Part shown: positions 8,787 through 57,737 of the stretch, piece after piece
How the letters are laid out: each line of letters opens with the position of its first letter
Position numbering within the stretch: position 1 is the first letter of the stretch
Sequence record: PV593634.1
Strand: one strand, 5' to 3'
DNA: 64,000 nucleotides
Program-made: the position numbers and the translations under genes
Notes under the pieces: generated by a model
Told to the model about the DNA's origin: nothing
Databases searched by the model: none
What the model saw: the letters and a program-made list of their open reading frames with translations, nothing else

Positions 8787-9296
8787 ATGAAAATGCAAGT
8801 TACTAAAGAAATGATCAAAGCTCTGGCCTCTCAGATTTTCATGAACCGTGAGATGATCGAAAAGTCAGATTGGTTTCTGATGGAAGAGTTCTTCATCGCC
8901 AAAGATATTGAGAGCGGTTTTAGTTCGTTTGCTTTATTCAAGGATAGTGCTAAACTCGGTAATATTCACAGCCTGGGTAGTGTTGAGCATATCCATGCGA
9001 CAATTACCACTATGTTTAACGATTATATCCGTGCTGAGGTTGAAGACGCAACCGAATACTTCCTGCGTTCTTATGGTACAAAACCGTTCATTCATAAGTT
9101 CCACGATTTGACACTGGCTCGTGGCCAAGCTGGTCGTAGCGGTCTCTACGCTAATGACACACTGACCAAAGGCGATCAGATCGTTTATCGTAAATGTATG
9201 TTGACCAAAGATCTGGATAAAGACATCCTTGAAATTGTCGTGCGTGATCAAATCCACACCCTGGTACTTGATGGTGTAATTACGATCGAAATCTAA
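8787..9296 (+). CDS. Hypothetical protein
   Basis: 169 aa, AAGGA RBS, own promoter motif and terminator. Confidence 0.7.
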   Translation: MKMQVTKEMIKALASQIFMNREMIEKSDWFLMEEFFIAKDIESGFSSFALFKDSAKLGNIHSLGSVEHIHATITTMFNDYIRAEVEDATEYFLRSYGTKPFIHKFHDLTLARGQAGRSGLYANDTLTKGDQIVYRKCMLTKDLDKDILEIVVRDQIHTLVLDGVITIEI

Positions 9297-9303
9297 ACAT
9301 AAC

Positions 9304-9332
9304 CCCTACCCCTCCTTTCGGAGTGGGTAGGG
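9304..9332. terminator. Terminator hairpin between convergent genes
   Basis: CCCTACCC...GGGTAGGG. Confidence 0.7.
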
Positions 9333-9356
9333 ATCTATGATCTTATTTATTTTCTT

Positions 9357-11681
9357 TTAGTAACGACGGAAGCCCATACGGTTTTGCTTAGAGCGTTGTT
9401 CTACCAAACGTTTACCGCGTTCTGCTTTAGCGTTCTCGATAACTTCGTCAATGGTAATTGTCTTACGCATTTCCTTAGGAATCAATTCAGACAGTTTACG
9501 GATCTCCATCTCAATACGAGCTGCCAGTGTATTGTTATCACTTGTTAGCAGTTCTTTAGTAAGTAGGTTGATACGTTCACGAATCTTAACGAACAACTGA
9601 AGCTGGTCTTTGTTGTACTTAGGAGCATCCCCATTATCACGAAGGGTTTTGATCTCAATAAGCGTTGCGCCTTGAGGGATGTTGTAACGGTCTTTATTGT
9701 AACCCATCTTAATAAACCAGTAGGTCAACAACCAAGCAATTACCAAGTCATCGTGTCCTCTTGAGCTGTGGTCAATACGACCATCCTTATCTACTTCCAA
9801 ACCAATCAGTTCATCGATCAACAGTTTGTAGCGAATACCTGCACCTGTTAGTGAAATAGCTTCGTGGATAAAACCATACATCTGACGACGAGATTCAGGA
9901 CCCGTGTGGAATCCGAACTTACCTTTATGACGAAGGTAGAACTCTTTAGTACGATGTTTAAAGCTCATCTCCATTACATCACGATATTCGTTAGCATACT
10001 TGATAGGTTTATCAAAGATATCGTTGAACAGTCGAGTGAATGGATCGATACCATACGCTGGCAGGATAATCAATAAACGTTCGATCATCATAGCAGCACG
10101 GTTTCGTTCAATGATCAACATCGAGTTACTAATCCGAATCAGGAGTTCCTTACAAACGTCCGTAACGTCATCCAGGAAGGCTAGCGCATATCGACCTGTA
10201 CCAATGACCTCACCTGACTTAAGACGTCGTATAACAAGCGTACAGGCATCTCGGTCGTTGGCGTCTGAGGTATCCATCCCGTAGAGTAGATATTCAGTTG
10301 GATCATCAATATAGACTTGCAGTTCTTCTTCTGAAATGAACCAGTCTACAAACAGGCCAGTATCTCCGATCTCTTCGTTTCGTAAGTGTTCTACTTTTGA
10401 CTCTGCTAGTTTCTCACGAGTAAAGTCATCGAACAGTTTGTTCATCCCTTCTTCAGTCCACATCATCAACAAGTCGATCTTAGCCTTAGACCAAGACAGA
10501 CCAAGTTTATCCATGGTCTCTTTAACCCAAGCATGACCAAAGCCAAGTTGAAGGTGGGTGAACATCATCCCGATTTTCGGGTGAGTGGTTTTAACAGGGG
10601 AAGCTTTCATGATACGCTGAACGAGGTGAGTCTCTGAATAACTATCAAAGAACTTCTCACGCCACTCAGTAGAGTTCATGAAGTCGTCGTGCATGTACTT
10701 ACCTTCCTCTTTTAACACGGAGTTAGGTGTAGTAGCTTTCGCTGTGAAATAAGGAATGCCTTTCTCACGCGCTTCCTTCTGTGCAGTCAGGGTCGCAGGA
10801 CCCGAACCGTTTATGATGTTCTCTATGTACTTAGTCCATGCAGGTTCATCGTACAACAGAACTTCGAAGGTTGAACCACGGCTGACGTTCTCTGCACCAT
10901 CCGCACCACCCGAAGGTACACGCACTTCAAAGGTGTTCTTCTTATCTTCACCAAAGGCTTGGTAGGTTAAGGCGTTACCAGCATCCTTATCCTTGTAAGT
11001 CATGTTGGTTAGGTATTCAGGTAAACCAGCACGGATCTTCTTCAGAGCTTCAACGAACTGCATACGGTTAGCTGCAGCAAGTGTAATCAGACCAGTACGG
11101 AAACCACGACCTAACAGATACTGCATGATAAATGCAAGTACCTGCATCCCTACAGTTTTACCAGATTGACGCGGCATCAGGATAGTAGTTGGGATATGGT
11201 TAACGCAAGACCAGATGAAAGAGATAACAGCACGGTTACCACGGAAGCGACGACCACCGATCTTGATTACTTCACGGAGAATGTACCAGATGTTTTCGTT
11301 ACATTCGTTCAGGATCATCATCCGCTGTTCATCGGTTAGATCTTCAGACCAAGGATCGAGATCTTTAATCAACGGGTTGTTGATTTGCAGAAGGAAGTAA
11401 TAGTTCTTAATTCCCATCTGTCTAAACAGTTCAGCAGTACGGAGGAAAGACTTGTTAGTCGTCTCGGTATGAACACCAGCACCATAGCGAGAGAAGTCTT
11501 TAAGGAAACGTACAGTCTTAAGAGTCCAAAGGGAATCTTCCTCATAGTGAGCTTCGATACGATGATCGTCTTCATCTAAAGGAGTGCGTTCGTTCTTGTC
11601 ATCCATCAGGAACTTAGGTAAACTGCCAGCTTTCCATCCCTGGTGTTGTAGGATCTTCTTGGCGATCTCTAAATTACTCAT
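9357..11681 (-). CDS. terL: Terminase large subunit
   Basis: 774 aa; Walker A PRQSGKT, Walker B LLYDE, nuclease GMDTSD and HDDLVIA. Confidence 0.92.
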   Translation of the reverse strand: MSNLEIAKKILQHQGWKAGSLPKFLMDDKNERTPLDEDDHRIEAHYEEDSLWTLKTVRFLKDFSRYGAGVHTETTNKSFLRTAELFRQMGIKNYYFLLQINNPLIKDLDPWSEDLTDEQRMMILNECNENIWYILREVIKIGGRRFRGNRAVISFIWSCVNHIPTTILMPRQSGKTVGMQVLAFIMQYLLGRGFRTGLITLAAANRMQFVEALKKIRAGLPEYLTNMTYKDKDAGNALTYQAFGEDKKNTFEVRVPSGGADGAENVSRGSTFEVLLYDEPAWTKYIENIINGSGPATLTAQKEAREKGIPYFTAKATTPNSVLKEEGKYMHDDFMNSTEWREKFFDSYSETHLVQRIMKASPVKTTHPKIGMMFTHLQLGFGHAWVKETMDKLGLSWSKAKIDLLMMWTEEGMNKLFDDFTREKLAESKVEHLRNEEIGDTGLFVDWFISEEELQVYIDDPTEYLLYGMDTSDANDRDACTLVIRRLKSGEVIGTGRYALAFLDDVTDVCKELLIRISNSMLIIERNRAAMMIERLLIILPAYGIDPFTRLFNDIFDKPIKYANEYRDVMEMSFKHRTKEFYLRHKGKFGFHTGPESRRQMYGFIHEAISLTGAGIRYKLLIDELIGLEVDKDGRIDHSSRGHDDLVIAWLLTYWFIKMGYNKDRYNIPQGATLIEIKTLRDNGDAPKYNKDQLQLFVKIRERINLLTKELLTSDNNTLAARIEMEIRKLSELIPKEMRKTITIDEVIENAKAERGKRLVEQRSKQNRMGFRRY

Positions 11682-11773
11682 TCGCGTAATTACCTTGTCA
11701 AATAGTTAATCGCAGCACAGAGGCTTACAGGAGGTTTAATAACAAACTATTCATTTGAATAAGGAATCGGACA

Positions 11774-11790
11774 TATATCATTAAAGTGTA
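11774..11790 (+). promoter_or_regulatory. Phage promoter-like motif (variant)
   Basis: TATATCATTAAAGTGTA. Confidence 0.55.
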
Positions 11791-11833
11791 AGTACAATAA
11801 TGTATTACATAACCTAATTTAGAGGGCTTTAAT

Positions 11834-12277
11834 ATGACTACTTTTACTAACGAGTTCAAAGACAACTTGGCAGCCATCACCGGGAACGGTACTCTAATTA
11901 AGTTGGATGTGGTTGACCCAAATGTGGAAGAACGCAGACTGGGTCTGGTCCGTGAATATGGGTACGACAAAGATCGTTTCGATGCGGCTTTGTTTATCTA
12001 TATCTGTAACGTGCTGGATGACCATGGATTAGCTAATAAATATCCAATGGGTCGTGAAGTAATTATTGCAACTACAGCTAAGTCTGTAGTGGATTGGTTC
12101 AATAGCGGTAAGCTGTTGGTGAATACCGGTTATAGCTTATCCATGTATATCGCTAGTCGCGTTGGACCGACATGGTTGGACGAAGGCAAATGTCCTTCTT
12201 CTGAGACTATTGAATTGATCGAGAAAGATATGGACCGTGTGTTCAGTGTCTGGCATGATCGCATGTTCGATTTTTAA
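11834..12277 (+). CDS. Hypothetical protein
   Basis: 147 aa with RBS, promoter motif and terminator. Confidence 0.7.
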   Translation: MTTFTNEFKDNLAAITGNGTLIKLDVVDPNVEERRLGLVREYGYDKDRFDAALFIYICNVLDDHGLANKYPMGREVIIATTAKSVVDWFNSGKLLVNTGYSLSMYIASRVGPTWLDEGKCPSSETIELIEKDMDRVFSVWHDRMFDF

Positions 12278-12935: not shown

Positions 12936-14401
12936 TATCTATAAGCTTCCATTGTTAAGGTTCTCAAAACAATGTAGAGCATCAGGCTAGTACGAAGAGA
13001 AGTAATCTTAATCTCCGTCTTAATACCTGTCATTACCTTCACGATCTCGTCACCATTAACACGCAGCTTATGTAGCAGTGCGTTGGTGGATTTACTTGAA
13101 GTATAAGCTCCACGTATTTTGAAGAACACGTTTTTGATGTCATCTGACCGAATGTTGTTAGTTGCCAAATACTCGAACATGTGCGTGGTTACGTCATCAA
13201 CGAACTCCCGGTAGCTATCACCTTTAGGGTGAGCCCATTGAGCAGGGAAGTCTCGGAGGATCATATCCAGTTTATCAGCATCTGTACGAGGAATAGCTTT
13301 AGCAGCATAAGTTGCAAGCTCCTGTTTAAAGAAACTGTTTTTGTCTGCTAACACAACACCGATATAGTTCTTGTAACGGTTAACGTGTTTCTGAACATCT
13401 TTGATATTCAGTTCGCCATCAAGCATTGCAAGACCAGAATCAGTCTCAACCAAATCAACGGAGTCTTTAACTTCGTACAACACTTTGGTATAGTCGTTGA
13501 TTACACCTTTAAGACGTGACTCCATGTCGTTCACCATGTAAACGATTTTCTTGTCATTATCCATCTTAGCAAATGTATCGAAGTGAATGCCTTTATTGCG
13601 GTCAATGATAAACTCACCACGAGCACGGAACAAGGCGTTCCATGAACCATAACGTTTGATATCAAACTTAAGGGACAGTTTGTTATACGTCGTAATAGCC
13701 ACGTTCTGTTTTACCAGGTAACCGAAGTAATGGTTCATGATCGAGGTCATGATGCGGTAGTGGAACAACATAACCAGGTTGATCAACGCATCTTCTTTCA
13801 ACTGCGGTGGTAACTCGGCCACTTGAACACGGTGCATCAAGTAAACGATAGCCAGGTTGAATGCTGAGGAAGATACTTTAAAGTCTTTGTTGATCCATTT
13901 GGTTTTGATCAACTCGTCACGTAAACGAACTTCGTCAACATCGATAATGTCACGGAAGAAAGTAACACGATCAGATGTTTTAAATAGAATGCGGTGAGTT
14001 CCTAAATAAGGAGAACCGAAGAACTCTGTATGATCGTTATCTTTGGTGGCGAAACCGTAGACGTAACGTTTGAGTGTTTGCACCCAACGTGGTGTGATCT
14101 CCAGATCATCAACCATCTGATCAAAGATATCCTTGACAGCATTGTCACGGTTATAATTGAAGTTAGGTTGCAGAGCTTCAAAGCCCGCCATATACTCAAG
14201 GTTCTGAGTATAGGACTCAAGGCCACCAAACTGGTTAAGAGCAACTTCAGGACCAAACAAGGTCCAAGGTTGATCTCGTGACTCCATACCTGCTAGGAGT
14301 GCTCTCAGTTCGTTATCTGACAACTGTTGCTCATCGTACTCGTCTTGCGATGTAGGAACAAAACTTTGACGAATAGAGAGCGCGGCTTGGTTAAGATTCA
14401 T
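12935..14401 (-). CDS. Virion (probably head) protein with acidic propeptide
   Basis: 488 aa; N-terminus carries AGME/S, GGLE/S and AGFE/A motifs. Confidence 0.6.
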   Translation of the reverse strand: MNLNQAALSIRQSFVPTSQDEYDEQQLSDNELRALLAGMESRDQPWTLFGPEVALNQFGGLESYTQNLEYMAGFEALQPNFNYNRDNAVKDIFDQMVDDLEITPRWVQTLKRYVYGFATKDNDHTEFFGSPYLGTHRILFKTSDRVTFFRDIIDVDEVRLRDELIKTKWINKDFKVSSSAFNLAIVYLMHRVQVAELPPQLKEDALINLVMLFHYRIMTSIMNHYFGYLVKQNVAITTYNKLSLKFDIKRYGSWNALFRARGEFIIDRNKGIHFDTFAKMDNDKKIVYMVNDMESRLKGVINDYTKVLYEVKDSVDLVETDSGLAMLDGELNIKDVQKHVNRYKNYIGVVLADKNSFFKQELATYAAKAIPRTDADKLDMILRDFPAQWAHPKGDSYREFVDDVTTHMFEYLATNNIRSDDIKNVFFKIRGAYTSSKSTNALLHKLRVNGDEIVKVMTGIKTEIKITSLRTSLMLYIVLRTLTMEAYR

Positions 14402-15246
14402 TAGCGTTTCCTTGGAACGGTCATCTTGATAGAATCTGCTTTACCCTTAGGATCAGCATAAGCAAGATATTTCTTCATCTCGGTGTTAAACATATCTTTG
14501 AATTCACGGTGGGCATCCGCGTATCCTTGGATATCGTCTTGAACATCTTCAACCGTTACACCAAAGCGAGATACCGCTTCTTGCATACCACGTCTGCAAG
14601 TCTTATAGATATAAGCTTTAACACCTAACTCTACAAGCTCAGCAAACTTGTCATACATCTTGGGTGGGATTATGGAGAAGTGTTCGTCATAGGACAAAAC
14701 AACTTTAGCGATCATATTAAACATGGCTGAACCAGCATCACGAATAATGAAGGAGTTATTCCCCGTCATTGTGAAACTAGTAAATGAACGCTGTACCTGT
14801 CCATCATCTAAACCATTGATCAAGCGGTTCATACTACCGGTCATTGAACTACTGCCACAAGTTGCGTAGTTGTTGAAGTTGTAACCGTTGTTAATAGCCC
14901 GATTAATATTTCCAGGATAGACTTCTATTACCTGGATAATACGGCGACCGCCAGTCATAAAGTCTGGAACGTTAACTGCAATGATACCGCCTTGCAGGTT
15001 TTCAATATTGGCAGCGCTAAGATCAATAATCTCAGTTGTACCACCAGCGACGTTCAGCAAAGGCCCTACCATCTTCATGATGACCTTTTCACGAATACCT
15101 TGTTCAATTGTGAACTCATCATTCACAGGAGCCCAAATGGACCCATAGCCGTTATTTGGATTGTTAAAGGCTAACTTGAGTAAGTATTCCGAAATATCAG
15201 TAGGTCCGTTGATAACGTACTCAATTGAGAAATCAACTGGATTCAT
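14401..15246 (-). CDS. Conserved hypothetical, probably virion protein
   Basis: 281 aa, GAGG RBS, translationally coupled to the next gene. Confidence 0.6.
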   Translation of the reverse strand: MNPVDFSIEYVINGPTDISEYLLKLAFNNPNNGYGSIWAPVNDEFTIEQGIREKVIMKMVGPLLNVAGGTTEIIDLSAANIENLQGGIIAVNVPDFMTGGRRIIQVIEVYPGNINRAINNGYNFNNYATCGSSSMTGSMNRLINGLDDGQVQRSFTSFTMTGNNSFIIRDAGSAMFNMIAKVVLSYDEHFSIIPPKMYDKFAELVELGVKAYIYKTCRRGMQEAVSRFGVTVEDVQDDIQGYADAHREFKDMFNTEMKKYLAYADPKGKADSIKMTVPRKR

Positions 15247-15296
15247 AATAACCTCTTTTATAATGGAATTACAAAAGATCGAAGTACAGACATAAA

Positions 15297-15325
15297 CCCC
15301 TACCCCTCCGAAGAGAAGGTAGGGG
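15297..15325 (-). terminator. Intrinsic terminator
   Basis: CCCCTACC...GGTAGGGG; minus strand continues into TTTATG. Confidence 0.75.
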
Positions 15326-15333
15326 ATATGCTT

Positions 15334-15436
15334 GTCGGGTAAGGCAGGACGGTTTCAGGCATGAATGGCAGACACACCTGAATCCCCGTTTCGTCCATTT
15401 GTTTTAGTTCGCAGGACTCGTCAGCTGTTACGAACA
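15334..15436 (-). ncRNA. Type I hammerhead ribozyme
   Basis: Minus strand: CAG CUGACGA GUCC-17 nt loop-GGAC GAAA CGG-hairpin-CCG UC^ CUG. All core nucleotides and stems I-III are present. Confidence 0.88.
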
Positions 15437-16037
15437 CCTCTCTCTCACCAGGGTAGAGATTTGGTAGGTCCTCAGATATCGCATCGCTAATCACGTTAGC
15501 TAATAGGCATTTGGAGTATCAGGACTCCGCCTTGAGTTATGCTTTCGTTCTGAAGGACCAATGGATGTATCCTCACAACCTCAGACACTAGACTCGATTC
15601 ACGTAAGTGTTTAATTTTGGTCTCGGCCGTGTCGGTAGCAAGGATACTGAAGGGATGCAACGTTCCCAAGTAAGATAGATATTGTTTCGCTTCGGCCCAG
15701 GATGGAGTTCGGGTTCTACCATCATCGATAACCCGACGAGCGCCGTCGGAGAGTGCATTCAGCTTATGCTACTGGACATTCTATCAAACGCGTTGCTAAG
15801 CGCCAACGGATTCCGAAGGCACCATCCACCAGGGCTGTTTCGTACCTGACCCATGAGTCAGAATACCAGTCACCTGGATTTAGTTCCCTGGAAGCTGCGA
15901 TTCCTCCAGGGATTTAGCCCTCAACTTTACGCCGGTCTTCGCCAGCAGGCTGAGGGTCTTACGAACCCATTGTGTTGACTGGTGAATCCGAGTTAAGAGT
16001 CCTTAGTCGTTAAGACTTACTGCCCATTAACCCCGAC
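15334..16037 (-). ncRNA. Large structured non-coding RNA (about 700 nt), family not recognised
   Basis: No credible ORF; 5' and 3' ends complementary; many hairpins and long-range helices; G-U pairs favour the minus strand. Confidence 0.75.
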
Positions 16038-16064
16038 GCACACTTCCCAACAGTTTGGGTCTAA

Positions 16065-16460
16065 CTATGATCCGTAATCGAGTTTTACGAATCTACCTTT
16101 ATAGTAGCCAAAGTTTTCAGGCTTTGCATCGCTTCTATAAAAGTCAGGAGAGATTGTGGTTAAAGATGGTGACAACGCACAGAGTCTTTCTAGCTCAACG
16201 AAGTATAGTCCTCTGTTATTAACAGGGGCGCAACGTCTCATCACTATGAACAATCCAGTACGTGTTCCCATAACCGACGGACACAGATGTGAATCAGGTC
16301 TATCAGCTATTCCTCTCCATTTCCATTCAGTAATATTAGCTAGCAGTCCTTGTAGGAAATGTTCCCAACTGTAGAACGACGGTAGTTTAATAGCGTACCG
16401 TTTCGTCAATATCACTAACCTGGTGGCGCCTTTTCTGTTAACCTTGATATTGGGCAACAT
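16065..16460 (-). CDS. Minimal protein-kinase-like fold protein
   Basis: 131 aa; GATRLV, YAIK (VAIK-like), DAKPEN (DxKxxN), KLDYG (DFG-like). Confidence 0.65.
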   Translation of the reverse strand: MLPNIKVNRKGATRLVILTKRYAIKLPSFYSWEHFLQGLLANITEWKWRGIADRPDSHLCPSVMGTRTGLFIVMRRCAPVNNRGLYFVELERLCALSPSLTTISPDFYRSDAKPENFGYYKGRFVKLDYGS

Positions 16461-16680
16461 GAGGCATCAGTGCAGACCAACCGCCGACGTGTTTATCGTC
16501 AACAAAGATCTGTGGAACTTCGCGAACCATAGTGCCACAAATTTCACCGAGCTTAACAGCATCGATACCTTGCTCAACGATGTCGATGTATTCAACTTCG
16601 ATAGCAGGTTTTGTGGCACACAGGTTTTTAGCTTTAACACAGTTAGGGCAATTCGGTTTGCCGTAAATCGTTACTTTCAT
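16438..16680 (-). CDS. grx: Glutaredoxin
   Basis: 80 aa; CPNC, VPQIFVDDKHVGG. Confidence 0.9.
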   Translation of the reverse strand: MKVTIYGKPNCPNCVKAKNLCATKPAIEVEYIDIVEQGIDAVKLGEICGTMVREVPQIFVDDKHVGGWSALMPHVAQYQG

Positions 16681-16860
16681 TTCTTATACTCGCAGGTTTA
16701 TTAAATATGAATTCATATTACAGTGTAATCATCACTCGTCTTGGTTTCCGTTCAGAGTGTTTCATAGTTAGCCGTAACCTTATGATGAATCACTTAGGTT
16801 CTTATGGTTATGTCTTTCGACACCTTTACACTAACCAGTGATACTGGAATGAATAAAGTT

Positions 16861-16947
16861 TGGAGCCAAGTACTGGATTCGAACCAGTGATGTCCTTTCG
16901 GAAATGGATTTGCAATCCATCTGCTTCGACCGCTCACATAACTTGGC
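16861..16947 (-). tRNA. tRNA-Cys(GCA) with long variable arm
   Basis: Acceptor GCCAAGU/ACUUGGC, anticodon arm AUGGA-UUGCAAA-UCCAU, T arm ACUGG-UUCGAAU-CCAGU, U73, encoded CCA. Confidence 0.9.
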
Positions 16948-16951
16948 GTAA

Positions 16952-17057
16952 TCGTCTCGGCCTCAGGAGTTTAACCTGACTACTGTGAAATCGCCCAGTG
17001 GTAGAAACTAATCATCCACCATCACGACTTCACGACCTATCTACATAGATAACCGAA
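16952..17057 (-). ncRNA. tRNA-like element B
   Basis: UUCGGUU/GGCCGAG stem, UCAGG-UUAAACU-CCUGA T-like arm, 3' ACGA; interior is not a cloverleaf. Confidence 0.4.
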
Positions 17058-17060
17058 TTT

Positions 17061-17148
17061 GTTATCGGGAGCAAGATTCGAACCTGCATAGTCTTACGGA
17101 CGTATCCGCCGTCGAATTTCCTCACTAGGTTTAAAAGACTATCCCGAT
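17061..17148 (-). ncRNA. tRNA-like element A
   Basis: AUCGGGA/UCCCGAU stem, GCAGG-UUCGAAU-CUUGC T arm; D and anticodon arms replaced by a UAGUCUU/AAGACUA helix. Confidence 0.6.
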
Positions 17149-17154
17149 GTTTGT

Positions 17155-17544
17155 TTAATCAGACTGAACTTCTATAGGTTGAGCCTTTGTTCTAAGTCCG
17201 CTGGCTGTTGTTATCGAATCGTCTTGAACGAGACCGTTCTTAATGAACATAAGCTGTTTACCTATAGAAATTACTTCAGACCATCCAGCCACTTTAGCAA
17301 CCGATAGGATTTCATTGATGTGTTCTTTGGTGATTTGGCGCTTGGCCGAGATCTCCGATAAACCATTTCCAGCAAATGCATGGAGATTGGCTTTCTCAAT
17401 GAATTTATTAACTAGCTTTAACACATCACCGCTTGACATCAGGTAGATCGGATCGTTCTCGGTTCGATCTGCCGGATCCGGTAATAGCAGGACTTGGGCA
17501 TCTTGAATCTGAAGCGTTACATCTTTCATTTCTAACTTCCTCAT
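17155..17544 (-). CDS. Hypothetical protein
   Basis: 129 aa in the tRNA cluster. Confidence 0.6.
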   Translation of the reverse strand: MRKLEMKDVTLQIQDAQVLLLPDPADRTENDPIYLMSSGDVLKLVNKFIEKANLHAFAGNGLSEISAKRQITKEHINEILSVAKVAGWSEVISIGKQLMFIKNGLVQDDSITTASGLRTKAQPIEVQSD

Positions 17545-17604
17545 GGGTTGTTCGCTAAAAACCTTAAAATAGGTAAGCGAGGATCTTCATGACATTATGA
17601 AGTT

Positions 17605-17693
17605 TGGCAGAGAGTAAGGGATTCGAACCCTTGTGCCCCGAAGGACAACCTCCTTAGCAGGGAGGCGACTTAAACCAACTCATCCAACTCTCT
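17605..17693 (-). tRNA. tRNA-Ser(GCU)
   Basis: Anticodon arm CCUCC-CUGCUAA-GGAGG, long variable arm, G73, CCA. Confidence 0.95.
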
Positions 17694-17815
17694 AATAGGC
17701 TCTCTCTCCCTATTTAAGGGTCACCTACACCAACAGCGCCCGGTATTTAGCCGAGATGTAATTATGGGATTGGGATTTTCAAGCCCTCACCGGCGGTGAT
17801 TGTAGAGAGATAACG

Positions 17816-17891
17816 TGGCGCTTGTGACAGGACTCGAACCTGTGACATATGGATTAACAGTCCACCGTTCTACCGACTGAACTACACAAGC
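17816..17891 (-). tRNA. tRNA-Asn(GUU)
   Basis: 76-nt cloverleaf, anticodon arm GUGGA-CUGUUAA-UCCAU, CCA. Confidence 0.95.
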
Positions 17892-17898
17892 TTAATAC

Positions 17899-18402
17899 TT
17901 ACCGTAACACTGGGAATTGGTCTTTTACTTCTCTTATGAGTTTATTGACGTCAATTCCTTCGGGAGCGCTTAATACTATCCTGGTTCTCGCATGAACTAA
18001 TGTCTGACCTCTGTTTGCTTCAGTGCAGGCTGAAGTCAAAGTAAAGTCACCATTTGTATTAATGGTGAGCGAGCTACCGGACAGTGTTACATTCTTCTTA
18101 CCGTTGATTACGGTAATGGTTTCACCAGACTCATTAACGATGTAAGCTTCTTCATTACGATCGACGTATCGAGTACGTGGACCATCTTCACCGTTGGCTT
18201 TAGGGCAATCGATTAAGATCGCAGCTATTGGACCACTGTTAAGGATGTCAAGTGTATAAGCACCAGCGATTGGTTCTAAGGTCTCACGCTGTGAGATATA
18301 GACTGGCTGATGCTGTTGGAATATTTGATCTCCAATAGATGGAGTCGTTACCTGTTCCTGTAAAGGAATGTCGTACTTGGTGATCTTCTTAAGATATAAC
18401 AT
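17899..18402 (-). CDS. Hypothetical protein
   Basis: 167 aa, GAGG RBS. Confidence 0.65.
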   Translation of the reverse strand: MLYLKKITKYDIPLQEQVTTPSIGDQIFQQHQPVYISQRETLEPIAGAYTLDILNSGPIAAILIDCPKANGEDGPRTRYVDRNEEAYIVNESGETITVINGKKNVTLSGSSLTINTNGDFTLTSACTEANRGQTLVHARTRIVLSAPEGIDVNKLIREVKDQFPVLR

Positions 18403-18414
18403 TTTGTATTGCCT

Positions 18415-19080
18415 CGTAGTGATAGTGTTGGTGTGAGGTATTATAAAGTCTGCCCCTCACTAAGATTCCGCTTAGTGTTTAACCGGCTGGCCGCCGGGGT
18501 CATTTGTCTCACTAGAGTTACTTGGAAGCTATTACAACCAAGACTTATCATGGGGTCCTCGCACTCCCCACTCCCTTCTCACGTCTTGCCCTCGACCAAC
18601 GAGGTGGAATCGGTACCACCCTTCTTAAAGAACTATCTTAATAACTCTTTAAGAAAGAAGGTTTGATGCTCGTCCGATATCTAAATCAGCGCTGGTCCTT
18701 TCGGAGGGCGACGAGCTTCAAGGTTCTGCTTGCACTTCATAGTCACTTGGTGTCTACTTGTAACAATGTACTTAGATCCGCCTAACTAATGGTGCTTGAC
18801 ACTACAGCGATGTTAACGCTTTATATAAGCCGAAGTTAATCGGTGATTGTTGAGTATCGTGGAGGGACTCGGTTCCTAATTGTGGTCCTGCTTTGGATTC
18901 GCTCTTTGGGATCAGCTGGAACATGTAAATTTCCTAAGAGAGTCCGACTTCGCTGCAACGCGTCCCTCGGCGGGAGATTGTTTTCCCAACATGTCGGGGA
19001 TGGTAGTACATTGTCAATCCGCAGATTGCCAATCAGACATGTCGAGAAATTGGTGATGTTTAACAGAGTATGGAGGCTCG
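18415..19080 (-). ncRNA. Second large structured non-coding RNA (about 600-660 nt; ends approximate)
   Basis: No credible ORF; 11-bp long-range helix, GAAA tetraloop and at least eight local hairpins. Confidence 0.6.
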
Positions 19081-56102: not shown

Positions 56103-57737
56103 ATGCGCTTTGATATACGCATGTCTGGTAAAAAGAACATCGATGGTATCGAAGTTAAACACCGCGATGAAGTGATTGTATTCCGTGGGGTTCAGAAAGT
56201 TAATGGTGGTGATGCCGACCAAGAACTGTTTGAATTCTTGAACGAATTCTTCCAGGGTTGTCAGGAACAGCAATTGGATAAACTCTGGGGTTTGATGATC
56301 CAGGGTAAGAAGATTCTGGAACCAGGTTATTTCGATGACGTAGATTCCGCTGACTTAGCCGAACTGCGTAAGAATAACGGCGACTATTTATATGTAACCG
56401 ACAAGCTGTTGAATGTGGTTAATGAAATCTATAAAGTCATTAGCCCTCATGAAATCGCTTATGCAGCACATGTAACTAATCGTTGTGAAGCACCGAAAGA
56501 TCTGATGGCAATGAGTTCCCTGGGTGATTATCCAGAAGAAACCACCATCGATAACATCAAGTACGCCGAACTGGTTAAGTTGGCGTTTGCTGCACAGCTC
56601 GTATTCCCGATCATGAACCAACTGCTGGACCACGTATCTGGTATGGCGGGTAAGGATTATAAAGATGCGATAGCTGGCCAGTATGTCATGGCTAAAGTGC
56701 AAGCTCTGACCAATATGGACGGCTGGCGTATTCTGGATACCTATGTTCGAGCATCATGCCTCCGTCAGGAAGCACGACGCAATAGTGTAAGCGTAGTCAG
56801 TGAAGTTAAATATATCGATTATATCGTATATAAAGGTTTGTTCAACAAACTGTGTCTGACATTCCTGCCAAGCAAGATCAACGGTAAGAACCTTTCTAAA
56901 GAACTGAACAGTTTAGTAGAAGGTGAAATCCGTGGTGGTTCTGACGTTAAGTTCAAAACGTTTAAAGATCCGAAACCAGGTAGTGATGATCAATCCATTC
57001 CAGAATCTTTCCGTATCGCACAGGCTGTCAACGGAACAGATGAAATGGCACAAGCTGAATACTTCACATTCGATCTGTATATCGAGAAGCAGGAACAAGA
57101 TGAATGGGGTCATCCTAAAGTTGTTCTTGAGAAAAAGACCAAAGACTTCTTCAAACATCAGTGTCGCGGATTCAGTATTAAGAATCAGAAACTGGCTGAA
57201 CGTTTATTCAATACGTTACCTCGTGTATGGCATTTCCGTTTAACACCGATCCATACCAAGTTACTTCAACTTGCCTTTATTAAGGATATCAACTATTACC
57301 TGATTCCGGTATTGAACTATGATCAGTTAATGGCGGCTATTTGTTTAGCTCAAGTTAAACTGTTCGAAATGGGATTCGAACATCTGGCCGTTCTGTGTTC
57401 AGTTATTCGTAACCCGGCTTATCCAACATCGTTCTTGGATGATGACTTTAAGTTATCCACTAAGGACCGTGAGATGTTAACAGAAATGTGTGACGTATAT
57501 ATAGGTCAATCGACCTCTAGTACTGAAAACATTCTGGTCAAATCTGTATCCGATTTCTTAGACGAACTGAGTACTTCTGGTTGGGATTCCACAATAGAAC
57601 CAGGTCTGCTCGGTAATGAGAAATTTGTAAACCTTATGTCGTCTGGTCAGATGTATCAAGTGGACTTGGTGCCTGAAATCAAACGTGAACTTTTAGAACT
57701 GATTAAATTAACTAACACCGTAGAGGAAGCTGAATAA
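56103..57737 (+). CDS. Non-virion RNAP specificity subunit (phiKZ gp68-like)
   Basis: 544 aa; size and synteny. Confidence 0.7.
   Translation: MRFDIRMSGKKNIDGIEVKHRDEVIVFRGVQKVNGGDADQELFEFLNEFFQGCQEQQLDKLWGLMIQGKKILEPGYFDDVDSADLAELRKNNGDYLYVTDKLLNVVNEIYKVISPHEIAYAAHVTNRCEAPKDLMAMSSLGDYPEETTIDNIKYAELVKLAFAAQLVFPIMNQLLDHVSGMAGKDYKDAIAGQYVMAKVQALTNMDGWRILDTYVRASCLRQEARRNSVSVVSEVKYIDYIVYKGLFNKLCLTFLPSKINGKNLSKELNSLVEGEIRGGSDVKFKTFKDPKPGSDDQSIPESFRIAQAVNGTDEMAQAEYFTFDLYIEKQEQDEWGHPKVVLEKKTKDFFKHQCRGFSIKNQKLAERLFNTLPRVWHFRLTPIHTKLLQLAFIKDINYYLIPVLNYDQLMAAICLAQVKLFEMGFEHLAVLCSVIRNPAYPTSFLDDDFKLSTKDREMLTEMCDVYIGQSTSSTENILVKSVSDFLDELSTSGWDSTIEPGLLGNEKFVNLMSSGQMYQVDLVPEIKRELLELIKLTNTVEEAE

Follow-up and report, generated by a model that had tools for sequence, protein, structure and literature searches.

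A large structured RNA with a predicted 3' hammerhead: a candidate RNA class of OBP-like jumbo phages

What is encoded by a gap of 818 nucleotides (nt) that separates two genes of a phage and is free of open reading frames (ORFs)? The gap (15247–16064) lies in the window studied here, i.e. the whole stretch of 64,000 nt that was analyzed, which was identified as part of Shewanella phage SXP01 (PV593634.1, 269.9 kb; 100% match with identical coordinates). On one side is a gene for a protein of 131 amino acids (aa), on the other the gene for a DUF7484 virion protein. A sequence-only reading of positions 15334–16037 had proposed a multi-domain RNA of about 700 nt, of unrecognized class, set near a tRNA cluster and containing a hammerhead ribozyme of its own. 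These proposals were upheld by the analysis below, with four covarying domains and 13 syntenic homologues. As judged from its sequence, the minus strand of the gap codes for a structured RNA of ~700 nt that runs from ~16059/16048 to 15348, and the 3' end of this RNA is predicted to be a new, atypically expanded type I hammerhead. Because it is conserved, intricately folded, without a match to a known family and furnished with its own 3' hammerhead, the RNA is put forward as a candidate new class of large non-coding RNA. Literature searches returned no description of it.

Conservation and architecture of the RNA

The folding of both strands was compared with that of dinucleotide shuffles. The minus strand reached -280.5 kcal/mol, against -237.2 ± 8.9 kcal/mol for the shuffled sequences (z = -4.9; 0 of 20 shuffles did as well), and the plus strand gave z = -2.8. 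An RNA on the plus strand was rejected because of this weaker fold and because all of the genes and tRNAs surrounding the locus are on the minus strand. Once the minus strand was read as RNA, every helix listed in the sequence-only reading was found where it had been placed, and that reading is corrected to a minus-strand RNA.

Homologues were located using blastn, nhmmer and pattern scans. All 13 are syntenic and fall within the OBP/N1M2/pEt-SU/Kc263/AH04 clade. They were found in Klebsiella phage N1M2, Serratia phages Sureiya and Yubaba, Kosakonia phage Kc263, Edwardsiella phage pEt-SU, Pantoea phage Survivor, Pseudomonas phage OBP, Erwinia phage AH04 and five uncultured contigs (L129, L130, L131, L144 and L162). 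The shared synteny consists of a glutaredoxin gene or tRNA-Met upstream of the RNA and the DUF7484 virion gene downstream; the tRNA-Met ends ~20 nt upstream of the RNA in N1M2, Sureiya and L162. Between phages from different host genera, this non-coding DNA is ~73% identical across 450 nt. The carriers are exactly those phages whose DUF7484 protein is closest to that of SXP01 (74–91% identity). Neither the large RNA nor the hammerhead was found by nhmmer or covariance-model searches in Aeromonas phages (DUF7484 identity of 64–73%), EL, RisingSun, phiKp_32, phiKT1019 or FishSpeaker.

Four blocks were aligned and their base pairs counted: the hammerhead (A1), the 5' domain (A2, 13 sequences), the 3' domain (A3) and the central domain (A4, which covers only the 10 sequences possessing this domain). 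Paired cells made up 88–95% of the four domains, compared with 23–52% in controls in which the partners were slid, and the observed covariation score was reached by none of 500 shuffles. For A2 (27 pairs), 88.7% of the cells were paired (35–51% with partners slid), compensatory changes were present in 19 pairs, and the covariation was 0.458 as opposed to 0.237 after shuffling. The corresponding values were 88.5% paired and 0.651 versus 0.287 for A3, and 94.9% paired and 0.391 versus 0.206 for A4 (0/500 in each case).

The coordinates of the conserved elements are given in Table 1. At the 5' end, the motif GGGAAGUGU is kept in 8 of 13 homologues, and a small hairpin equivalent to the SXP01 leader hairpin is located upstream of it in N1M2, pEt-SU and Survivor; the predicted cut is ~701–712 nt from this motif or the leader hairpin. 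Hairpin Pa, next in order, covaries (UCCAA:UUGGA in N1M2, CUUAAC:GUUAAG in OBP), as do its inner stems (CGGUC:GACCG in AH04, GCCC:GGGC in L144). Helices 3 and 4 of A2 (CCAGG:CCUGG and UCUGAC/GUCAGG) are 96% and 92% paired, with compensatory changes in 4/8 and 3/5 of their pairs, respectively. The helix that closes the central domain forms in every one of the 13 sequences, completely in 12 and with a single terminal mismatch in Survivor. Its commonest forms are GGGUG:CACCC and GGGUG:UACCC, and compensatory forms are GGAUG:CAUCC (SXP01), GGGCG:UGCCC, GGGCG:CGCCC and GGGCA:UGCCC. Enclosed within it are hairpin C1, three further hairpins and the long-range helices C2 (GCAACG:CGUUGC; variants GCAGCG:CGCUGU and GUAGCG:UGCUAC), C3 (GAUAGA:UCUAUC; variant CUAAAG:CUUUAG) and C4 (GUCCAG:CUGGGC; variants GUCCUG:CAGGGC, GUUCCC:GGGAAC and CCCCUA:UGGGGG). 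C4 and the hairpins of the central domain covary, and one of these hairpins displays a near-invariant 13-nt loop, UAGAACCCGAACU. In the 3' domain, 7 of the 10 pairs of the main helix show compensatory changes, the variants in relatives including GAGUUACCCGA:UCGGGUAGCUC and GAGGAUCUUGA:UCAAGAUCCUC. The last hairpin before the ribozyme likewise changes on both strands (CCCU:AGGG in N1M2, CCCA:UGGG in Kc263, CUACU:AGUAG in pEt-SU). All seven of the local hairpins that had been listed from the SXP01 sequence have counterparts in the homologues, where the pairing is kept via compensatory changes.

On these alignments, the conserved scaffold comprises the GUAAGACC/UAAAUCC region, the UGGUGGGUG:CACCC closing helix and the ACGAAAG/GCGAUA internal loop. 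In OBP, L129 and L130, unrelated hairpins inside the same closing helix take the place of the hyper-conserved central domain, and an extra domain, reduced in SXP01, is found in Kc263, L162, OBP and the L129 group. The family is modular, and its peripheral domains are swappable.

The long-range helices proposed in the sequence-only reading stood in part. An 11-bp helix (GAUUCAC/GUGAAUC with ACUC/GAGU, or ACUCGGAUUCAC:GUGAAUCGAGU, 15982–15993 with 15592–15602) exists in SXP01, but its shuffle statistic is borderline (p about 0.05), and no aligned counterpart was found in relatives. The helix CAGUCA:UGACUG is present in SXP01 but is confined to it; the relatives show GUGAACGG at that position. 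The terminal helix (16031–16048 with 15326–15347) is formed in the minimum-free-energy (MFE) structure of SXP01 and was seen by eye to recur in SXP01 (GUGUGC-GUCGGG:CCCGAC-aa-GCAUAU), Kc263 (GUGUA-UGUC:GACA-ccu-UACAU), pEt-SU (AGUGU-a-GAUCU:AGAUC-GUACU), N1M2/Sureiya and OBP, even in phages with an additional 250 nt between its strands. The long-range helices that are truly conserved, as far as the alignments indicate, differ from those that had been proposed.

The hammerhead and the segment beyond its predicted cut

The sequence and its covariation indicate that the built-in type I hammerhead is real. Its parts are, in order, the 5' strand of a pseudoknot (GUUCG), stem I (CAG), the core CUGACGA, stem II (GUCC/GGAC, with CGAAC in its loop), GAAA, a long stem III and GUC. 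In A1, CUGANGA and GAAA are invariant in 13/13 sequences, CCGUC is invariant, and the A15.1-U16.1 pair and C17 are present in all 13. Stem I is open and has 3–4 pairs with compensatory changes (CAG:CUG, UAU:AUA, CAU:AUG, ACC:GGU). Stem II is 94% paired and covaries (GUCC:GGAC, GUCU:AGAC); the core of stem III is 100% paired but invariant. Loop II also forms a 5-bp pseudoknot with the 5' extension of stem I; this pseudoknot is 98.5% paired, with compensatory changes in 3 of its 5 pairs, and occurs as GUUCG:CGAAC (SXP01), UGUCG:CGACA, CAUCG:CGAUG and CCCG:CGGG. For the hammerhead structure as a whole, 87.5% of the cells were paired, versus 23–49% in slid controls. Pseudoknots of this stem I/loop II type are a known tertiary contact of hammerheads and stabilize about 40% of the natural ones (PMC3088659).

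Loop II and stem III are unusually large. Stem III carries a conserved UCCA loop, for which no kissing partner consistent across the family was found. The family model R1 scored the SXP01 copy (15334–15440) at 83.9 bits, as was expected because SXP01 is among the sequences used to build it. The sole other R1 match in the 64-kb window (56486–56560, plus strand; 10.6 bits, E = 0.2) looks like a chance one. Because the predicted cleavage site, 15348|15347, falls inside the interval 15334–16037 of the sequence-only reading, the terminal helix spans the cut.

The segment that follows the cut is of two kinds. In SXP01, pEt-SU and Survivor, about 22 nt lead to a G+C-rich hairpin. In the other nine members for which the sequence is complete, the cut and the hairpin are separated by a conserved module of ~250 nt that is absent from SXP01; the partial contig L162 contains the beginning of this module, including its conserved loop. 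The transcription unit would be longer in most relatives, because this second RNA comes after the ribozyme. The module starts with a hairpin whose 13-nt loop, GCCYUAACNGUGA, pseudoknots with a downstream AAACN'GU, in which N:N' is C:G, U:A or A:U depending on the lineage. No Rfam match to the module was found in the SXP01-related loci scanned. In Aeromonas phages PS1 and pAEv1810, the module is found alone at the equivalent place, without the large RNA and the hammerhead, which suggests that the large RNA and the module are two separate RNAs cut apart by the ribozyme.

In most relatives, the hairpin, CCCCUACC...GGGGUAGGGG, keeps its sequence and not just its pairing ahead of the DUF7484 gene, and does so even in Aeromonas phage PS1. 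It was not called by a simple terminator scan, because its U-run is short. A different hairpin, CUCUACUCUCC...GGAGAGUAGAG, was observed in L129, L130 and L144, and in OBP the hairpin is followed by UUUUUGA. The conserved hairpin may have a role beyond termination; one possibility is an overlap with a promoter or regulatory site of the DUF7484 operon.

Genomic neighborhood and search scope

The tRNA genes for Cys, Ser and Asn are 0.8–1.9 kb upstream of the SXP01 RNA, a setting in line with the tRNA cluster originally noted. Also in this region, a tRNA-like sequence (17063–17148, minus strand) scored 28.3 bits, compared with the Rfam tRNA threshold of 29, and was not called by ARAGORN; its D-arm region has a 23-nt insertion, and its anticodon loop is shortened. 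The glutaredoxin gene is mis-annotated as a "putative virion structural protein", and its counterpart in the relatives is a glutaredoxin as well. The 131-aa gene is real: it matches phrog_4301 over its full length and has tblastn matches in 85 phage records (121Q-like Escherichia phages, Erwinia phage Y3 and others). Its stop codon marks the 5' limit of the gap. The DUF7484 protein is complete (profile positions 1–269 of 270 are covered), and its relatives were found in 211 phage records. Because these include OBP and EL, which we take to be members of the phiKZ-like jumbo phage group, SXP01 is classed, on protein sequence, as a phiKZ/OBP-like jumbo phage.

Scanning viral, metagenome and genome collections for the hammerhead pattern gave 28 loci, among which only L144, L162 and the previously found loci are members of the family; the remainder were set aside as unrelated hammerheads or chance matches. 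A high-GC viral contig with no relation to the family (L145, IMGVR_UViG_3300045136_000538) has four hammerhead-like matches within 3.4 kb (8866–12215, plus strand), which is the multi-hammerhead arrangement described for prophages. The scaffold-motif pattern GTAAGACC...AAATCCA...TGGTGGG gave two additional loci in IMG/VR, both of which were discarded as chance matches in coding DNA. As a probe of IMG/VR, the 14-mer GGTAGAACCCGAAC matched >120 loci, all unrelated, and the 18-mer GTAGCATAAGCTGAATGC returned pEt-SU itself only.

The annotation of these phages calls for correction, as the RNA gene is missing from every record. "Hypothetical protein" coding sequences (CDSs) overlie the RNA in two relatives, namely N1M2_252 (L002 3177–3689, plus; opposite strand to the RNA) and QYN80068.1 in Kc263 (L004 3324–3515, minus); both are probably spurious.

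Table 1. Features of the locus. Positions refer to the window except where another sequence is named.
Feature	Position	Strand	Details
tRNA-Asn	17816–17891	-	
tRNA-Ser	17605–17693	-	
tRNA-Cys	16861–16947	-	
Glutaredoxin gene	16438–16680	-	Pfam PF00462, E = 1.5e-10
131-aa gene	16065–16460	-	phrog_4301, E = 1e-33; absent from GenBank annotation
5' leader hairpin	16046–16059	-	CCCAA-ACUG-UUGGG; directly 3' of the 131-aa gene stop codon
5' motif and 5' strand of terminal helix	16031–16048	-	GGGAAGUGU; GUGUGC-GUCGGG
Hairpin Pa	15992–16031	-	GUUAA...UUAAC; interior variable
Single-stranded motif	15955–15962	-	GUAAGACC; identical in 13/13 sequences
Two 5'-domain hairpins	15886–15956	-	A2 helices 1 and 2; 7/9 and 5/5 pairs compensatory
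Hairpin	15918–15956	-	CCCUCAGC/GUUGAGGG
Hairpin	15886–15911	-	CCCUGGA/UCCAGGG
Helix around a hairpin	15829–15877	-	CCAGG:CCUGG around UCUGAC/GUCAGG (15845–15862)
Central domain	15649–15831	-	Closed by long-range GGAUG (15823–15827 region):CAUCC (15651–15655 region)
Hairpin	15733–15749	-	CCGACG/CGUCGG
3' domain	15467–15559	-	10-bp helix GGUCCUUCAGA:UCUGAGGACC, internal loop ACGAAAG/GCGAUA, two hairpins
3'-domain hairpin	15513–15528	-	GGAGU/ACUCC
3'-domain hairpin	15486–15500	-	GCUAA/UUAGC
Hairpin just 5' of ribozyme	15441–15459	-	UCUCU/AGAGA
Type I hammerhead (predicted)	15334–15440	-	Invariant core; covarying stems I and II and pseudoknot
Predicted self-cleavage site	15347–15348	-	C15348 (position 17 of GUC)/C15347; hammerhead consensus on A1
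Post-cleavage segment	15326–15347	-	Stem I 3' strand CUG, then terminal helix 3' strand CCCGAC-AA-GCAUAU
Terminator-like hairpin	15290–15325	-	G+C-rich CCCCUACC...GGGGUAGGGG, then UUUAUGU
DUF7484 virion gene	14401–15246	-	281-aa product; Pfam E = 1e-89
~250-nt module	L002 2707–2968	-	
~250-nt module	L004 3110–3410	-	
~250-nt module	L128 3673–3924	+	
~250-nt module	L131 3590–3858	+	
~250-nt module, further site	L134 2133–2287	+	
~250-nt module, further site	L133 1081–1240	+	

Mode of action and relation to known systems

The reading that we favor, and regard as reasonably likely, is that the locus is a gene of the OBP/N1M2/pEt-SU clade for a large, multi-domain, self-processed non-coding RNA that acts in trans. 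What follows on transcription, in vivo cleavage, the kind of ends that the RNA has and its action in trans is our inference. The minus strand would be transcribed as the last part of a unit containing the tRNAs, the glutaredoxin gene and the small gene. Once transcribed, the hammerhead would fold, its stem I of 3–4 bp being reinforced by the 5-bp loop II pseudoknot, and would cut after GUC, between 15348 and 15347. A ~700-nt RNA (16059/16048 to 15348) would thereby be freed with a 2',3'-cyclic phosphate end. Such an end would be poorly used by 3' exonucleases and poly(A) polymerase. The leftover in SXP01 would be a 22-nt tail and the terminator-like hairpin; in most relatives, it would be the ~250-nt pseudoknotted RNA, starting with a 5'-OH. 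The downstream piece may remain attached via the terminal helix and stem I, and the mature species could therefore be a nicked, two-piece RNA. In the infected cell, the body probably works in trans, either structurally or catalytically, by analogy with what has been proposed for GOLLD and ROOL (PMC5737381), and its role may possibly lie in a tRNA-related process.

Several observations weigh against this account. The Rfam Hammerhead_1 match was below threshold (16.5 bits versus 34, E = 4.2); the low score is attributed to the long insertions in loop II (15–22 nt) and stem III. The family comprises 13 sequences, representing ~10 distinct lineages in a single phage clade, and because it is so small and confined, the covariation stems in part from shared descent. 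The shuffle control carries no correction for phylogeny; the slid controls do, and they were clearly lower. The terminal helix, which would hold both pieces together, was not significant in the duplex-energy shuffle test. Neither a promoter nor a processing site was identified at the 5' end, and nothing was found that links the RNA to a particular biochemical activity.

A different account, which we consider unlikely, makes the RNA a cis-acting leader or processing element of the late virion operon. The hammerhead would then cut a read-through transcript, the conserved hairpin would be an attenuator and not a terminator, and the mRNA for the DUF7484 protein, a 488-aa virion protein and thymidylate kinase would gain a nuclease-resistant 5'-OH start. 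The RNA is indeed always immediately upstream of the DUF7484 gene and on the same strand, and the hairpin with its UUUAUGU is sequence-conserved, has a short U-run and was not called as a terminator. Moreover, for phage hammerheads that flank genes, a part in the processing of polycistronic transcripts has been suggested (PMC3088659). However, some 700 nt of covarying, partly hyper-conserved structure far exceed what the positioning of a ribozyme needs. The cut also precedes a strong hairpin (and, in most relatives, the ~250-nt structured RNA) and does not coincide with the start of an mRNA, and the 3' module is found without a hammerhead in the Aeromonas phages.

It is distinctly improbable that the body is instead the sensor of a regulated (allosteric) ribozyme, controlling the hammerhead cut by switching long-range pairings. 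This idea arises from an alternative pairing. The strand 5' of CCAGUC (AAGGGGU...) can pair with ACCCYUU by the closing helix over 15 bp in OBP (L128), 10 bp in Kc263 (L004) and 8 bp in N1M2 (L002), the equivalent in the SXP01 window being 15982–15995 with 15649–15658. This alternative is in competition with the GGGUG:CACCC closing helix, which is universally conserved. Both pairings can accommodate the G-to-A and C-to-U changes of SXP01, and the MFE structure of SXP01 places the 3' strand of stem I in another pairing. Against this, the alternative is absent or insignificant in 10 of 13 sequences, no ligand-binding motif was recognized, and the hammerhead owns a self-contained tertiary pseudoknot.

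It is very improbable that the RNA belongs, as a divergent member, to a known class (GOLLD, ROOL, OLE, group I/II intron, RNase P RNA or transfer-messenger RNA, tmRNA), although its size, ornate fold, phage origin and tRNA neighborhood are like those of GOLLD and ROOL (PMC5737381). Rfam 15 was scanned using cmscan, both at the gathering thresholds and with permissive cut-offs of E ≤ 10 in positions 14500–18500 of the window and E ≤ 1 in 15 related loci. Only tRNAs, the sub-threshold Hammerhead_1 match and chance-level matches were returned. The GOLLD model gave no match in the window or in 8 homologous loci; nor did ROOL, OLE or the group I/II introns match in the window or the homologous loci. 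No cmscan match to RNase P RNA or tmRNA was obtained, and ARAGORN found no tmRNA. An intron was rejected for want of joinable exons, the upstream 131-aa gene having a stop codon and the downstream DUF7484 protein being complete. Suspected likenesses to an RNase P P4-like "AGAACCCG", to a group I "GUAGAC..." and to Drum RNA were dropped after the Rfam scans. A mis-annotated coding region, a pseudogene or a chance fold is hardly credible: CDSs are annotated there in N1M2 and Kc263, but no conserved ORF was found in the gap (the longest sense-strand stop-free stretches of the 13 homologues, 49–94 codons, have none in common), the indels are not multiples of three, the helix substitutions are compensatory, and the covariation score was unmatched by shuffling.

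The preferred reading of a self-processed, trans-acting RNA has an extension, which we consider unlikely, to an activity that needs the RNA's own ribozyme. A closed precursor of 0.75–1 kb would become a nicked two-piece RNA or an RNA-only multimer with a cyclic-phosphate end, acting on the phage or host tRNA pool. If this were true, that action could be, for example, that of a decoy or scaffold versus tRNA-targeting defenses, or the RNA could be a ligation-competent ribozyme; a modular operon of ribozyme, ornate RNA and second RNA would have no counterpart elsewhere. To our knowledge, every large ornate RNA class with a solved function performs sophisticated biochemistry, and such RNAs are rare in bacteria and phages. 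The present RNA would add a class of about 700 nt (about 1 kb with the downstream module), the first in phiKZ/OBP-like jumbo phages. Within the literature and database searches made, it would also be the first large RNA to have a hammerhead as an integral part. The RNA lends itself to direct testing, since several cultured host-phage pairs exist (Shewanella/SXP01, Klebsiella aerogenes/N1M2, Pseudomonas fluorescens/OBP, Serratia/Sureiya and Edwardsiella/pEt-SU), and the swappable central domain and optional 3' module would constitute a natural deletion series for dissecting its function.

Among the closest known systems, the tRNA cluster of phage T4 contains stable RNAs (species 1 and 2, or RNA C and D) that are not tRNAs, are co-transcribed with the tRNAs and are released by processing. 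Unlike the 700-nt RNA, they are about 120–140 nt long and are released by host RNases, without a ribozyme. Theta ribozymes (minimal HDV-like ribozymes) are likewise small self-cleaving ribozymes near phage tRNAs that define RNA ends (PMC10879173). They are of another ribozyme class, and what they process is the tRNAs, not the 3' end of a 700-nt RNA as here. The phage hammerheads of Perreault et al. 2011 (PMC3088659) share the catalytic core, the three stems, the GUC site, the pseudoknot contact and the phage location, in which their cleavage is considered to divide long transcripts into units. They flank protein genes; here, one hammerhead forms the 3' end of a large, conserved non-coding RNA.

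GOLLD and ROOL are also close. These large RNAs, often found in prophages and adjacent to tRNAs (PMC5737381), are reported to assemble into RNA-only complexes (10.1101/2024.12.08.627333). In size and complexity, ROOL is surpassed only by rRNAs, GOLLD and group II introns (PMC5737381). The RNA described here resembles GOLLD and ROOL, which are hundreds of nt long, have many multistem junctions and pseudoknots, lie in phages or prophages, and are frequently adjacent to tRNAs, with which they are possibly co-transcribed (PMC5737381). In contrast, the Rfam models of GOLLD and ROOL fail to match SXP01-type RNA; their hosts are Lactobacillales, rumen or lake organisms, and its carriers are virulent phiKZ-like jumbo phages of Gammaproteobacteria. 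A further difference from GOLLD and ROOL is its integrated self-cleaving ribozyme, after which most members have a second RNA. As predicted from these sequences, what is new relative to the known large ornate phage RNAs is that the ribozyme is integrated, that the body is modular and that there is a partner RNA.

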